A stretch of 63,923 nt of DNA, the filler included, from Lenisia limosa (Eukaryota; Protista; Breviatea), in the NCBI GenBank assembly GCA_001655205.1. It is 14 parts of 14 records of this genome, joined end to end, with 100 filler letters (N's around TTAATTAATTAA, not from the genome) between each part and the next. Parts side by side here need not be neighbours in the genome. Positions count along the whole stretch, not along the records: positions 10,738 to 12,864 come from LPNZ01000570.1; 13 more parts are not named here. The stretch is one strand, 5' to 3'. Position 1 is the stretch's first letter, and every line of letters starts with the position of its first letter. Position numbers and translations under genes: made by a program. Below, piece by piece: positions 2,248 through 12,964 of the stretch. A model generated the notes under the pieces. That model worked only from the letters and a program-made list of their open reading frames with translations. It did no database searches and was not told the origin of the DNA.

Positions 2248-5200
2248 TCACCTATTCCTCAGGAAGGTCTCGAGGTCGCTGAAGACACGTTCGATGTCAC
2301 GGCTGCCGTCAACCCGGTGGCATACTGCAGTGTGGGGGCAGATGGCAGTGTAACACTCAAGGATTCCTGGGGTGGGGGGTAAATTTGGAAAATTAATGAA
2401 ACAAAAAAGCCCAAAATAACTTTGGCTGATAATACACAAGGATTGGTAAGGAGATTCAGTGCTAGTGTCACTGAAATTTGGTTACAGTATTATAAATAGC
2501 AATGAGAAATAAAAATAAGATGTATTAGTCAGATTCAGTCTACTTACTCTCTCTCTCCAAATAAAGATACGAAGATAAAGATAGAGATGATAGATTATGA
2601 AAAGAAAATACTGACAGTGTCATAATAATAATAACAAAAAAATAAATCAACCGAATCCAAAAATGAAAACAAAGCAAGGTGGAGATGATGGGACGTGCGG
2701 ATTATATCCAAAAACTCTCGGAAAATTTTGATATGTTTTTTTTCTCTTCCAAGCGGTATTACCATAGATTTTACCACTCGTAAATTGAGAAGTTAATTTT
2801 TGTTGACTTAAACAACTGCTATTCGGTTGCCAGGTCCCACGTGGAGATTGTCAAGGTCAATGGGGTCATCCCACGACAGTGTTCTCATTGCGATATCAAG
2901 CTCAACAACTGCCTCTACTGTCAGGGGGCTGAGTTCAAGGTGAGTTCCTCCGGTGCTTGTTTTGTAAAGAATTAACTTATTATTTTAAGTTGTTCAAACA
3001 AAACAAAACAAAAAAAAAACATTGCCGCCAATCTGGTAGAGCAACCTTAGCCCTTTCTTGGCACAACCCTCCGTGGGAGTTGGTGTTTCATGTGGATAAT
3101 TGCAATCTAGAAAGAAATGTTCATTTTAACTCAGGGGTGTTCTTCAGAAAGCTGCTGACAGGATGGCCACACCCTCCCTTGATCATCGTCGAGAAGTAGG
3201 AATTTATCATACTAATATAACCTTTAAGGCGATGAAGACAACTGTGTTTTAAAATGCCTTGTATAGGTTTCCTTCGCCAGCCAAATACGGGAAATCCCTC
3301 TCTGGGCTAATTGTCATCAGTGATAGTCGGCTTTTGTATTTTATTTTTGATTATTTTTCGAAACTTCAAACTTTTTCTTGGCGAATGGAATGAATGACCC
3401 GTCAAGCTTTGTTTTCTGGCTCATTCAACAGATCACTACTTCCGACACAATGCCTGTTTAAATTTTATGATATATTTAGGTCATACAAGACCGATCTACC
3501 AAAATGTGTTTCTGAAGGATGAGGTTGTTTGTCCATCTTTTTTGATAGCGAAATACAAATTGTCCATGATACTTAAGGTGCAAGGTTGAACATTCTTTGA
3601 TTTTTCAAAAACTATTTTTTCCTTAACAATCGTACAAATACCCCGAATTAGATATTTTGGTTGAAGAGTATCAAAGTGGTCATGTTATAATGAATAAATA
3701 GGAGTTCACCTTATTTGCCCAAAGCATCAAACATATAACATACAATGTATCATATCCTAACATGGTGTCCTTCCACCCTCACCAGCCAAGTTGTTCTTCC
3801 ACCCTCACCAGCCAGGTTATCATTGTAGGTTGCAATTCGTCTCTGGCATTTCGCCTCTGTATCGTCCTCGCGGCAAATACAGCGAGTTGCTACCTGTGGG
3901 TTGGTGAGGCAAGTTGACAGAATACTGTGGGGAAATGATCGTCATAATAGTTATGAATGAAACATTATACAAAAAAAAAAAAAAAAAANNNNNNNNNNNN
4001 NNNNNNNNNNNNNNNNNNNNNNNNNNNNNNNNNNNNNNNNNNNNNNNNNNNNNNNNNNNNNNNNNNNNNNNNNNNNNNNNNNNNNNNNNNNNGCGGGTTG
4101 AAGTCTCTGTGATAAATGTAGCCTAAGTAGTCAGGACAGGACTGTGTTTTGTATGTTTCACTAATATTTGTGTTTTATCAGAGGAGGCTGAAAAGACAGG
4201 TTGTCAGCACCAGATGTCCTGTTTCCTGTTCTACTCCGCGACTCCACCTCTACTCGTCCACCCCCCACCAGTTTCGGGATCCACCAAGCGGCCGACCACG
4301 CGCGAGATGAGAACGTCATCGTCCACGTCGAGTTCAATAACGTGCGTGGGGACGATTCCACTGCGCTGCAACGCGAGGGCCTGGTTGTGGGTACCTTGAC
4401 GGTGAAAAGGGTATATATATATATAAAAAAAGTTCAAAATCAATTGTGTTGGCTGACACCACACAAGAGTTGAAAACAACANNNNNNNNNNNNNNNNNNN
4501 NNNNNNNNNNNNNNNNNNNNNNNNNNNNNNNNNNNNNNNNNNNNNNNNNNNNNNNNNNNNNNNNNNNNNNNNNNNNNNNNNNNGGTTCGAAAAAGACTGG
4601 TAAAATACCGACAGTTTTCGAGGATTTATCGAGAGATTCAGTCTTTTTTTGAACCGAAGTGACGCCCTAGATAAAATACAGAGTGAACTTGTTTTGATAA
4701 GACATTTGAGAAACACACGCGGGTTGAAAAAACAATGAAAGAAATCGAAAGGAATAAGGACGATGAAAGAGCATCAAGAAGAGGGGGAAATAGTGACAAT
4801 TTGAGAGTGATAAGATGGGGGGAATCAAAAAAAAAAAAAGATATGANNNNNNNNNNNNNNNNNNNNNNNNNNNNNNNNNNNNNNNNNNNNNNNNNNNNNN
4901 NNNNNNNNNNNNNNNNNNNNNNNTGATAAATCAGGGGGCAAAATGATCGAAAGAGTGGCAACACAGATGGGTGAAAGCAATGAAACTGTGACAAGATAGA
5001 TGGGTGAAAACTGTGGCAAGATAGATGGGTGAAAGCAGTGAAACTGTGGCAGGATAGACGAAAAAAAAGGAGTATTGGTGTACCCAGGGGGTCAATACCA
5101 ATGACAAAGACAACAAAGAAAATGGTGTCCACTCTCGGTTATTTTTTTTTTTTTTATCACATTTTCCCCATGGTTGTATTTCTTTCATGTATTCTCTTCC

Positions 5201-5780
5201 TCCTAAAAAGCTCACGGGGGAATCCATCCAAAATCCAGCCATGCTTTTGACAGTCAAGAGTGTCAAGCTTCTCCTTCACCTACAGGATAAGATTAATAGA
5301 TCTCATTATTTGAAAAAATAGGCGTATCTTGTCGAAGCCGTCCGCCCATCATGATTCTCATAGATACTGGGTTATTGTTTAATATTAATTCACCCAATCA
5401 TTTGTGGTACAACTCTGTGCACACAACTTTCTGCGTGCCTCCAACATGTGTGAAAAGTGGAAATAACAGATGTTGGTGCGCATCGTAAACAAAAACACTC
5501 TTAACCCATTATAATGGAAATGATAACCCCCTCATTCCGTGGTAATAAAAACGCAGTATCCCATGAAAAATTGCACGATTAACTCCCCGTAACCCCATCA
5601 TACCATCGTAGACATGCACCCGCCCTCTCATACCATGGTGATGATGTCCTCATCAGGAACGAGTTTGCCGTTGTCAATGAGGTGCTTGACCTTCTTGCCC
5701 AACTCGGTGTTGTTCTTCACATTCTCTCTCAACATGTCTCCCGTACTGATGTGCACCAAATGGTGCTCGTCCACAATGAA
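2248..5780 (-). CDS. ADK: Adenylate kinase, spliced, 5' P-loop exon not in scaffold. Exons 5634-5780, 5216-5279, 4269-4394, <4093-4122, 3809-3893, 2248-2366.
   Basis: Spliced translation: [40 protein letters not shown]|[14 protein letters not shown]|[33 protein letters not shown]|YIYHRDFNP..|[26 protein letters not shown]|[25 protein letters not shown]. All checkable GT-AG junctions are phase-consistent. Confidence 0.93.
2368..2447 (-). repeat. Family B 3' part, ending at the last ADK acceptor
   Basis: CCAATCCTTGTGTATTATCAGCCAAAGTTATTTTGGGCTTTTTTGTTTCATTAATTTTCCAAATTTACCCCCCACCCCAG|GAATCC. Confidence 0.8.
2754..3525 (+). CDS. Putative multi-exon gene nested antisense in the ADK intron (exons 2754-2779, 2834-2939, 3040-3082, 3135-3195, 3267-3325, 3432-3525)
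   Basis: Consecutive GT-AG junctions keep one stop-free frame: ..[35 protein letters not shown]|[14 protein letters not shown]|[20 protein letters not shown]|[20 protein letters not shown]|NHYFRHNAC.. Product not recognised. Confidence 0.55.
4410..4481 (-). repeat. Family B copy upstream of the ADK acceptor at 4395
   Basis: TGTTGTTTTCAACTCTTGTGTGGTGTCAGCCAACACAATTGATTTTGAAC. Confidence 0.75.
4585..4667. mobile_element. MITE family A copy in ADK intron (left end lost in gap)
   Basis: GGTTCGAAAAAGACTG...CAGTCTTTTTTTGAACCGAAGTGACGCCC followed by TAG. Confidence 0.8.
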
Positions 5781-10290: not shown

Positions 10291-10780
10291 AAATTCGGCT
10301 TGGGAGAGGCTAAATAATGAGATTTGGGGAGTATGAAGTTAATAATAAAATCGATGTTAAAAATAAAACACCATAACCCCTGCCTCAGATATCACCATTC
10401 TCTCCCCACAGGATGCTTTGACACCCATCCCCCCATAATTTTTATAAGTCACTGAAGGTTCCAGAAGACATGATAAATATTGAAGAATGATCTAGAATTC
10501 AGTCTTTTGGGAACCGAAAGCGAAGCTCACTGTTTACGTACGTTTTCCCATCTTGGACAGAAATCTCCAACGTGGATTGGATCCCTCCCACCCCCTCCAA
10601 AGGATGGTCGTCAATATATACATGTACTATATATCATNNNNNNNNNNNNNNNNNNNNNNNNNNNNNNNNNNNNNNNNNNNNTTAATTAATTAANNNNNNN
10701 NNNNNNNNNNNNNNNNNNNNNNNNNNNNNNNNNNNNNTCGGCCAGATGCTACCTTATTTTTTGTTTCTCATTGTAAATAT

Positions 10781-10880
10781 CTTTGTTTGTTTTGTTGTTG
10801 TCAACCCTCATGTGTTGTCAGCGGAATTGATTTTGGGCCTTTTTTTTTTTGTTTCATAAACTTTCCAATTTTACCGCTCC
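10781..10880 (+). repeat. Family B copy upstream of a probable acceptor (~10915)
   Basis: CTTTGTTTGTTTTGTTGTTGTCAACCCTCATGTGTTGTCAGCGGAATTGATTTTGGGCC..GTTTCATAAACTTTCCAATTTTACC. Confidence 0.8.
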
Positions 10881-10915
10881 ACCCTTTCTTTGTCCTAAAA
10901 TATCCTTACTCGGCA

Positions 10916-12727
10916 GACGGTTACACAGTCGCGTGCTGTCATGGACCCCTTAAGTGACGAAATTGTAAGGGGTTTTTGTTTTGTTTTTTGAAACAAGAGA
11001 AATAATATGATAGACATTAGAAATCTAGTGAAACAAAATGTTTAGCTTTGTTTACTTTCCAATTTACGCTGGATTGATGGATGCGGTGCTGAAGAAGCGA
11101 CTGGCCTGCGCTTTGTTTGTTTTGTTGTTTTCAACCCTTATGTGTTGTCAGCCAACAAAATTGAATTTAGGGATTATTTTTTATTATTATTTTTTTTTTT
11201 TTGTTTCATAATTTCCAAATTACCCCCCACAGCTCTCAGCCCTTCTTAAACTAACCTCCACCATTACTGAGGCCATTTTGTTCCTTTTGAAGCACCAAGG
11301 TTGGGGGGGGGGGGTCAAATTTGGAAAAGATAAGATATATATACATATGAGGTCCGCGCGGAATTGTGTGTAATACAGGAGTTGAAAAAGAGCATGCCTA
11401 CGGTCCGACAAAGACCGTTAAAGTGTCGAGATTTATCGAGGAACTATCGAGAAATTTCGTCTTTTTTCTGACCGTAGGAAAGCCCTTGATTTATTGCAAA
11501 TGATCGGATATGTCTCGTAGAAGCTTTGGTCAGGTACTACCTTGTTTTGTTTCACTTTGCATTTACGTATTACAATTTAAGAATCATAGTTGGTCTTAGG
11601 AAATGAATAAGGCTTTTCAGTACAGTCCCGACAGACTTAGTTTCTCGATAAATCCTTTATAATTATCGACATTTTGCCGGTCTTGTTCGGACCGTGGAAA
11701 AGTCCTATAGATAAACATCTACCCAATTTTTAATACCGTCCAGATTCCACCACTCTCCGCCCTGTCGCAGCCGTAACACACAAGCTGCAATGGCGCTTGG
11801 TCAAGGCCTTGAGTTTAATGGATAATTTGGGGGACGGTAACACTGAGGAAGTTTGTCAAGCTGCACTGGAGGCCCTCCCCAGTATGAAAAAGGACGCTCT
11901 CCCACTACTGCCAATTCTGAAAATGTTTCTCCTATTTTGTTTCATAAGTTTTGCCATTTTCCTGAGCTCACCCCTCTTTCATTAACCCCCAGACCCCTTC
12001 CACATCCACATTCTCAATATCATTCGTCGATTCCTAGTAAAAACCGCTCAGCCAACAACGGACGTTGACAAAGCCATAGTGGTATGGGGATACAATATGG
12101 GTAAAAAAAATGACGCTTTATTATCAAACAAAATCTAATTTTCTTAGATAATCAGCATTTGATTATTACAAAAAAATCTAATTAATAGAAAAAACCTAAT
12201 TATCTTAGATGATAAACAGAAATACGCCTTTCATGGTCCCCCCTTGGGCCCGAGCCAGGAAGATGGCCCTCGCAAGTTCGGGGGAGAGGGTATTTTTTTA
12301 GGGCTACGTGCAATTGATTGCCTAATTTGAAGTGACCTTTTGTCAATGGGAACTCCATTTCAGACACTTTAATTTCAAATTATCTGTCCTTTTATTTGCT
12401 ATTTTTTGTATGACTCTTGTTATTATCTTATATTTATTATTATATTTAGTAATTATTTTATTTTTTTGGGGGGTACAGGGCTGTTATTCTGCTTTGTTTC
12501 ATCCCCCATTTTCACAGGATATTAACTCGAAATAGGCGAGACGGTTACGGGCAGCGAAGTGGCTTTTGCCTATGAGGCTTGCTTACAGGTTGGGGGTGGG
12601 GGTATGTTTCTTTGTTTTGTTTTGATTGGTTTTTGTTTTTTGTTGTTTTTATCGCGCCTTGAGATTTATATTCATCGCACCCGCAGGTTATGCATTCTCG
12701 CCAAGAAGTCGGACTGTTGACAATGGT
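10916..12727 (+). CDS. Unidentified multi-exon gene fragment (e.g. LSALLKLTSTITEAILFLLKHQ; GETVTGSEVAFAYEACLQ)
   Basis: Short open blocks flanked by CAG acceptors and GT donors (e.g. ~11232-11299, ~12536-12589). Confidence 0.4.
11066..11231 (+). repeat. Family B, full-length reference copy ending in the acceptor CACAG
   Basis: ACGCTGGATTGATGGATGCGGTGCTGAAGAAGCGACTGGCCTGCGCTTTG...TTTCCAAATTACCCCCCACAG|exon. Confidence 0.88.
11393..11485. mobile_element. MITE family A copy (A2)
   Basis: CCTACGGTCCGACAAAGACCG...TTTTTTCTGACCGTAGGAAAGCCC. Confidence 0.75.
11610..11706. mobile_element. MITE family A copy (degenerate A2)
   Basis: GGCTTTTCAGTACAGTCCCGACAGAC...GTCTTGTTCGGACCGTGGAAAAGTCC with the A core. 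Confidence 0.65.
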
Positions 12728-12964
12728 ACGGGGGGTATGAAGAAGATAAAGCTTAACATACTAAATATAATAACTCTCCAGTTTAACACGCCAATTTTAT
12801 TTTCCCATTTCAACATAACTATTTTTTATTAATACTTTTCATAAATTGTCTGTCTTTACAACCTNNNNNNNNNNNNNNNNNNNNNNNNNNNNNNNNNNNN
12901 NNNNNNNNTTAATTAATTAANNNNNNNNNNNNNNNNNNNNNNNNNNNNNNNNNNNNNNNNNNNN

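Follow-up and report, generated by a model that had tools for sequence, protein, structure and literature searches.

The window analysed here is a stretch of 63,923 nucleotides from Lenisia limosa, and all coordinates given without a contig handle count along it. Our judgement on its copies of the repeat named family B (hereafter B) covers the piece at 10738-12864 (~2.1 kb, LPNZ01000570.1), which is AT-rich eukaryotic DNA with a GC content of ~38%. GT-AG models built by hand, in silico, on the + strand of this piece predict a gene whose exons, 39-177 nt long, join into 181 stop-free codons, with a GC fraction of 0.50 in the exons and 0.35 in the introns. An intron ending at 10916 is followed by exon 1 (10917-10964; 16 codons, phase 0 at both ends), intron 1 (10965-11232; 268 nt), exon 2 (11233-11299) and intron 2 (11300-11770; 471 nt), the last of which has a degenerate B-like 3' end. 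Exon 3 (11771-11947), which is HEAT-like by language-model features only, is separated from exon 4 (11993-12081) by intron 3 (11948-11992), which is 45 nt long and ends in a C-run and AG. Intron 4 (12082-12219; 138 nt) starts with GTAT and GGGG, followed by a weak inverted B-module, TTATCAAACAAAA. The + strand model continues with exons at 12220-12289, 12536-12588 and 12687-12725; intron 6 (12589-12686; 98 nt), between the last two, starts with GTT and a G-run, has a B-like GT-rich spacer at 12603-12621 and ends in CACCCGCAG. In total, three of the seven introns of this gene carry clear B sequence (the intron ending at 10916, 10965-11232 and 11300-11770), and the other four have short B-like motifs only.

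The protein atlas gave a HEAT-repeat lead only for the host gene. A HMMER search with exon 3 returned only three weak matches, to low-complexity proteins, and found no orthologue, and exact look-ups of three ORFs gave no record. Exons 3 and 4 are in frame only with the donor at 11948, that is, with the 45-nt intron; the donor at 11925 leads to a frameshift and a stop. Sequence resembling the 3' module of B spans 11935-11962 (module profile, E = 0.028) and is overlapped by the last 8 codons of exon 3, so that with the donor at 11948 these eight codons would be translated from B-module-like sequence. The segment 11925-11992 could be either a partial exonisation or an assembly indel. In intron 5, a miniature stretch at 12462-12517 runs from a G-run to the TTTGTTTCAT motif, a C-run and ...CACAG, and its sequence resembles a B-family element of which only the two ends are left. 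Intron 2 also holds an unrelated inverted-repeat element at 11400-11695, whose 63-nt arms (11400-11462 and 11633-11695) are 78% complementary.

Both copies of B that the earlier note had reported in this piece, starting at 11066 and 10781, were found at those places, with a similarity far beyond chance. The full copy (11066-11232, + strand) makes up the last 167 nt of intron 1, with the predicted acceptor AG at 11231-11232; its end had been placed at 11231, which is correct in that the copy reaches the acceptor but one base short of the true end at 11232. It consists of a GC-rich head (11068-11111; 44 nt), a GT-rich spacer (11112-11130), a 34-nt hairpin (11131-11164), an A/T-rich run (11165-11202) and a 3' terminal module (11203-11232) composed of GTTTCATAA, TTTCCAAATTA, a C-run and ACAG. 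The sequence ends in ...ACCCCCCACAG, and the next exon begins at 11233. The AC at 11066-11067 does not belong to the head of B; it is the end of a fragment, in direct orientation, of the 3' module of B itself (11045-11067, + strand; GTTTAC..TTTCCAATTTAC) that abuts the GC-rich head upstream. The second copy (10781-10884, + strand) lacks the 44-nt GC-rich head and has the spacer, the hairpin (10801-10830), the T-run and the 3' module; the next AG, ~30 nt downstream at 10915-10916, is the intron end. Repeat finding aligned 10781-10822 with 11111-11152 on the same strand at 95% identity over 42 nt, and the likeness of the two copies continues through the T-run and the GTTTCATAA...TTTCCAATTT motif (repeat families D1-D6).

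A pattern scan of genome contigs for the conserved B cores gave three matches, of which one was true; the other two, L001 and L002, were chance hits inside bacterial genes. The same cores had no match in two metagenome scans and two viral scans. The true match, L003, is CBDLPA010000039.1, a contig filed under an uncultured Colwellia MAG (marine) built from run SRR2018010. To judge from its sequence, L003 (1-8000) is a eukaryotic contig mis-binned in a bacterial MAG, as host or protist contamination, since it has GT-AG introns, GC-rich exons in a 148-codon frame and repeat families in common with the window. Its + strand model, built in the same way, has exons at 279/281-430, 3917-4041, 4952-5080 and 5490-5532, which give 148 stop-free codons with a GC of 0.57, versus 0.38 in the introns.

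L003 carries at least five further copies of B, all on the coding strand of the model (+), and one of them runs straight into the acceptor. The 3' part of a copy lies at L003 27-86, where this upstream copy continues past the module into a C-run and a tail, and a full copy follows at L003 ~95-240. A degenerate copy and then a copy split by a nested 2.3-kb transposon occupy L003 ~1325-1415, continuing at 3756-3837. Finally, the full copy at L003 5346-5489 ends at the acceptor and is preceded by a fragment of the B 3' module (5305-5346), the same arrangement as that of 11045-11067 upstream of the full copy in the window.

Other repeats were observed on the same contig. The 2.3-kb element (L003 1409-3762) has long terminal inverted repeats, the cores of which (1442-1496 and 3655-3709) are 94.5% identical; it is inserted inside a B copy, whose halves resume on either side. 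It contains broken ORF pieces on the minus strand (2137-2922) that are transposase-like by eye and have no Pfam match. Relatives of the inverted-repeat element of window intron 2 are present in both orientations, at L003 818-899 and 6803-6875. A near-perfect 72-nt palindromic hairpin at L003 595-670, which reaches sub-threshold scores with several miRNA precursor models on either strand, most likely represents a small foldback repeat. Very long homopolymers (a C-run of ~21, T38 and G17) lie in or at intron ends at L003 4841-4929 and 6779-6795, and their lengths are probably unreliable in short-read assemblies.

The window copies matched the L003 copies by blastn with E = 2e-26, 2e-21 and 3e-19, and identity among the B copies is 71-85% (15-29% divergent). 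An nhmmer profile gave E values of 1e-23 to 1e-44 for the five copies from which it was built, which is circular; its sole other match at E<0.01 was L003 27-80 (E = 0.005). All six profile matches at E<0.01, and 15 of the 18 at E<10, are on the + strand, counts that are inflated, as the sense strand is T-rich and several copies lie in one gene and are hence not independent. The evidence base amounts to ~10 kb and two or three genes. As in introners, similar introns occur at non-homologous sites in unrelated genes, the flanking exons of the window and of L003 being unrelated. On these alignments, family B is a real dispersed repeat family, and an old one. It is also present in an independent assembly, and is therefore not an assembly artefact.

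The order of the parts in a full B is the same as in the window copy, and the hairpin is the best-conserved of them, with 83% column identity. The earlier description of B as hairpin-bearing is accurate as far as pairing goes, the hairpin being paired in all five copies (95.7% of cells), but neither covariation nor special stability accompanies it. Zero compensatory changes were found among the five copies, and the pairing thus says nothing on RNA function. Likewise, B folds no better than shuffles (z = +0.42), and the whole L003 intron gave z = -0.01. The Rfam search that had been proposed for B was run and returned no match, ARAGORN detected no tRNA-like structure in B, TRF reported nothing that explains B, and B translated in two frames and searched as protein found nothing. 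The Rfam, folding and covariation results lend no support to a spreading intronic RNA, as which B had also been read. Conservation and constant pairing of the hairpin would be expected of a structured RNA from within the introns (a regulator of splicing, or an RNA of the snoRNA or miRNA kind), but with no Rfam match, no tRNA-like head, no excess stability and no compensatory change we give that explanation, together with an assembly artefact, next to no credence. B was also considered as a SINE and as a ciliate-type DNA-eliminated sequence. The first was rejected on the missing tRNA-like head and Rfam match and on a 3' end that is a C-run, not an A-tail; the second on the absence of TA or pointer repeats at the junctions and on the GC-rich exons.

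Every copy of B lies in an intron of the stop-free + strand GT-AG models, and B is therefore, under these in-silico models (181 codons in the window, 148 on L003), intronic and sense-oriented, as the earlier note had held. The only RNA run listed by the run searches, beside the probable source run, contains none of this stretch. In most copies the branch-point-like motif TTTCAT(A)A is found 20-30 nt ahead of the AG, with a pyrimidine stretch and then a C-run behind it. B was said to abut or approach the acceptor, and this is what we observe: two copies end exactly at it (window 11232 and L003 5489), and three of the five terminal copies stop short, the AG used in the model lying 25-90 nt further downstream. 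The exons behind the two exact copies, including exon 2, which directly follows B, are similar neither to each other nor to the tails of the other copies (z about 0), so that homology stops at the intron-exon junction. Similarity limited by the junction is the criterion that defines introners (PMC9860276). In some cases, what comes behind B is in turn another B module or tandem B (L100 versus L1 tail, z = 3.5; L003 3895-3907).

The three copies that stop short would suit a non-autonomous repeat of the ordinary sort, inserted into introns that already existed, where selection, and not the creation of introns, would produce the bias. Sense copies near the 3' end would be harmless, or would be co-opted as a stronger pyrimidine tract and acceptor, and antisense copies would add AATAAA-like signals and A-runs to the transcript; the reverse complement of B's T/A-run would indeed carry poly(A)-signal-like strings. 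The age and divergence of the copies agree with such a history, as does the failure to see a target-site duplication. It accounts poorly, however, for two copies that end exactly at the AG with the frame kept, which is unlikely for a random landing in an old intron, for G-runs at the 5' splice site that go together with 3' ends bearing the C-run and B (see below), and for tails that are B-module-like or tandem B. We consider it an unlikely explanation overall.

Ahead of each of the three full copies stands a direct fragment of the family's own 3' module, and in two of the three the junction between module and head falls at the same point, ...CCAATTT(T)AC and then the head. The 3' modules are, in addition, reiterated in tandem on L003 (1-235, 3790-3916 and 5170-5489). 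In these three cases the upstream fragment may be either an inherited terminal direct repeat or the trace of insertion into earlier copies. A rather improbable reading, in which B alone is mobile, would take it as the latter: a self-contained 3'-splice-region cassette would integrate in or beside existing 3' splice regions, preferably entering the 3' module of earlier copies, and would replace or rebuild the branch, pyrimidine and acceptor regions. The upstream fragments with their identical junction, the tandem reiteration and the otherwise dissimilar 5' parts of the B-bearing introns all favour such a cassette; yet the identical junction in two copies is explained more simply if it was inherited with the element, whole-intron units are indicated by the G-run starts and by the similarity between 5' ends, and such targeting, which would rest on three cases only, has neither a mechanism nor a precedent.

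In both sequences, putative donors have 5-17 consecutive G, set off from the GT by 1-3 nt (window 11300, 12589 and 12726; L003 431, 5081 and 6777), and a 4-G form is found at window 10965 and 12082. Runs of five or more G number 7 in the 2.1-kb piece, against ~0.5 expected by our own rough estimate, and sit right after the GT at the putative donors. A poly-G sequencing artefact was rejected, the runs being internal, at junctions and in two assemblies. Introns that end in B's C-run have a G-run, the complement of that C-run, 1-3 nt behind their initial GT. For example, intron 1 starts with GTAA and GGGG, ends in a C-run and ACAG, and has complementary ends. Some of the G-run introns have, moreover, an inverted copy of the last 15-25 bases of B behind the G-run. 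On L003, both introns with a G-run start finish with a C-run and AG and have B or a B-like module just upstream, and a third intron (GTGAGT...TTTTCAG) has neither the runs nor B. Because run-start and B end go together in this way, the G-run looks, at the sequence level, like the partner of B's C-run rather than a general splice signal.

The likeness of intron ends could also reflect species-wide splicing signals (a G-run after GT; TTTCAT and a C-run before AG) instead of descent, which we hold to be very improbable. The short introns 11948-11992 and 12589-12686 do have only short terminal motifs in common, and convergent splice signals may explain the shortest motif matches, and those only. 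They fail for the 120-140 nt of internal homology in B (GC head, spacer and hairpin), which cannot be a splice signal, and two introns of L003, from 4042 and 5533, lack G-runs behind their donors, which are of the ordinary GTGAGT and GTATGT kinds.

The start of intron 2 (11300-11330, + strand) is a candidate left terminal inverted repeat. It is composed of GTT, a 12-nt G-run and TCAAATTTGGAAAA, and an inverted copy of the terminal ~15 nt of B follows the G-run (z = 5.9, 0/200 shuffles). The predicted duplex between the 45 nt at either end of intron 1 has an energy of -24.1 kcal/mol, compared with -11.7 +/- 2.8 in shuffles (z = -4.4, 0/300). End-to-end intron duplexes gave z = -4.4, -2.4 and -2.3; in L003 5081-5489, with z = -2.4, the MFE fold pairs both ends. 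The first ~30 nt of the L003 introns from 431 and 5081, both of which end in B or a B-like module, are alike (0/500 shuffles; 16/500 without the G-run). The criterion for introners in PMC9860276 extends to similarity up to the 5' boundary. The 5' ends of the window introns have little in common beyond the G-run, a profile of the 45-nt 3' module found inverted copies only at E = 2.5 or worse, and beyond the G- and C-runs the inverted repeat is clear in one intron only; the terminal inverted repeat is thus suggestive. No target-site duplication was visible at any copy, and by eye no direct repeat flanks 10965-11232, 11300-11770 or L003 5081-5489. From the G-run starts, the inverted copy at 11300-11770, the pairing of the ends and the common ~30-nt starts, we infer that the mobile unit probably spans the whole intron, and not, as had been proposed, its 3' part only.

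The reading that we prefer, with a probability of roughly 0.55, is that B is the asymmetric right-hand part of a non-autonomous, MITE-like, intron-generating transposon, that is, an introner. B is dispersed, sense, and at or near the acceptor, and the earlier term "introner-like" describes it best. The right terminus of the element would provide a ready-made 3' splice region, with the T-run, the branch-point-like TTTCAT(A)A, the pyrimidine stretch, the C-run and the AG. At the left terminus a G-run would come directly behind GT and 1-3 nt, and after it part of the right end would recur in inverted form; pairing of the G- and C-runs may be of benefit. If such an element moved at the DNA level into a coding exon, its insertion would be tolerated only when the element was spliced out, which would be possible in one orientation. 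The surviving copies would then be sense because only that orientation could be spliced, and the position lock would follow from B being the right end of the element. Introns would, in this scheme, have been created by the element, as opposed to older introns having received it. The 5' and middle parts of the introns would have come to look unrelated through subsequent nested insertions and through repetition of the 3' module.

Against the introner reading, or its simplest form, stand the three copies that end short of the AG, the inverted repeat that is clear in one intron only, the failure to see a target-site duplication, and two further observations. The copies are old (15-29% divergent), which leaves recent mobility unsupported. 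A simple transposon bounded by inverted repeats, for its part, does not predict the direct 3'-module fragment ahead of each full copy.

The catalogue of Gozashti et al. 2022 (PMC9860276) comprises 548 introner families from 175 genomes, most of them aquatic. Many accepted families lack a target-site duplication, and families with terminal inverted repeats but without such a duplication have been reported (PMC9860276). In single-orientation introners, the 3' splice site is provided by one end of the element (Roy et al. 2020, bioRxiv 10.1101/2020.10.14.339549; PMC9860276). The combined lock on strand and position, which had been noted as unusual for ordinary MITEs and SINEs, thus has a precedent. 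The single-orientation introners of dinoflagellates (the Symbiodinium type, and classes 4 and 5 of Polarella glacialis) are like B in this use of one end as the 3' splice site, in having one orientation only, in the presence of copies in unrelated genes and in being GC-poor relative to the exons. Unlike B, the dinoflagellate introners owe their 5' splice site to a target-site duplication of 4 nt (GHNN). The introner elements of Micromonas and Aureococcus, from the work of Huff, Zilberman and Roy in 2016, are reportedly non-autonomous and DNA-transposon-like, precisely spliced, and carry a splice site. They are young and near-identical, with clear target-site duplications, whereas B is 15-29% diverged and has none visible.

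Family 4 of Acanthoeca sp. (PMC9860276, Fig. 2D), also from a marine eukaryote with short introns, is similar to B in having inverted termini without a detectable duplication; the inverted repeat of B is mostly homopolymer G- and C-runs and is only partly preserved, and the likeness is one by description. Fungal introner-like elements (PMC3609843, PMC4457414) are, like B, reported to exceed ordinary introns in length and to become ordinary-looking as they decay; they are defined by an unusually stable predicted structure, whereas B and its intron fold as shuffles do. Ordinary MITEs resemble B in being small, AT-rich and non-coding, with inverted termini and nested in one another, but they normally show no lock to strand or splice site and do have target-site duplications. 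Family B is, on the best reading, an introner family of an already described sort.

Among mechanisms for bursts of intron gain, introners have the best support. The presence of B in three of the seven introns of one gene, with short motifs in the other four, would be in keeping with a genome in which a single family had given rise to much of the intron load. Three details of B are unusual: G/C homopolymer termini able to zip the intron ends together, a complete cassette of branch, pyrimidine and AG signals at one end, and the reiteration of that cassette. These details make the family a convenient natural experiment on what an inserted sequence must contain to be spliced. As an old and decayed family, B also shows how introners fade into ordinary-looking introns. 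If B alone were to move, it would mean splice-site turnover across many genes, a mode so far undescribed for introners.
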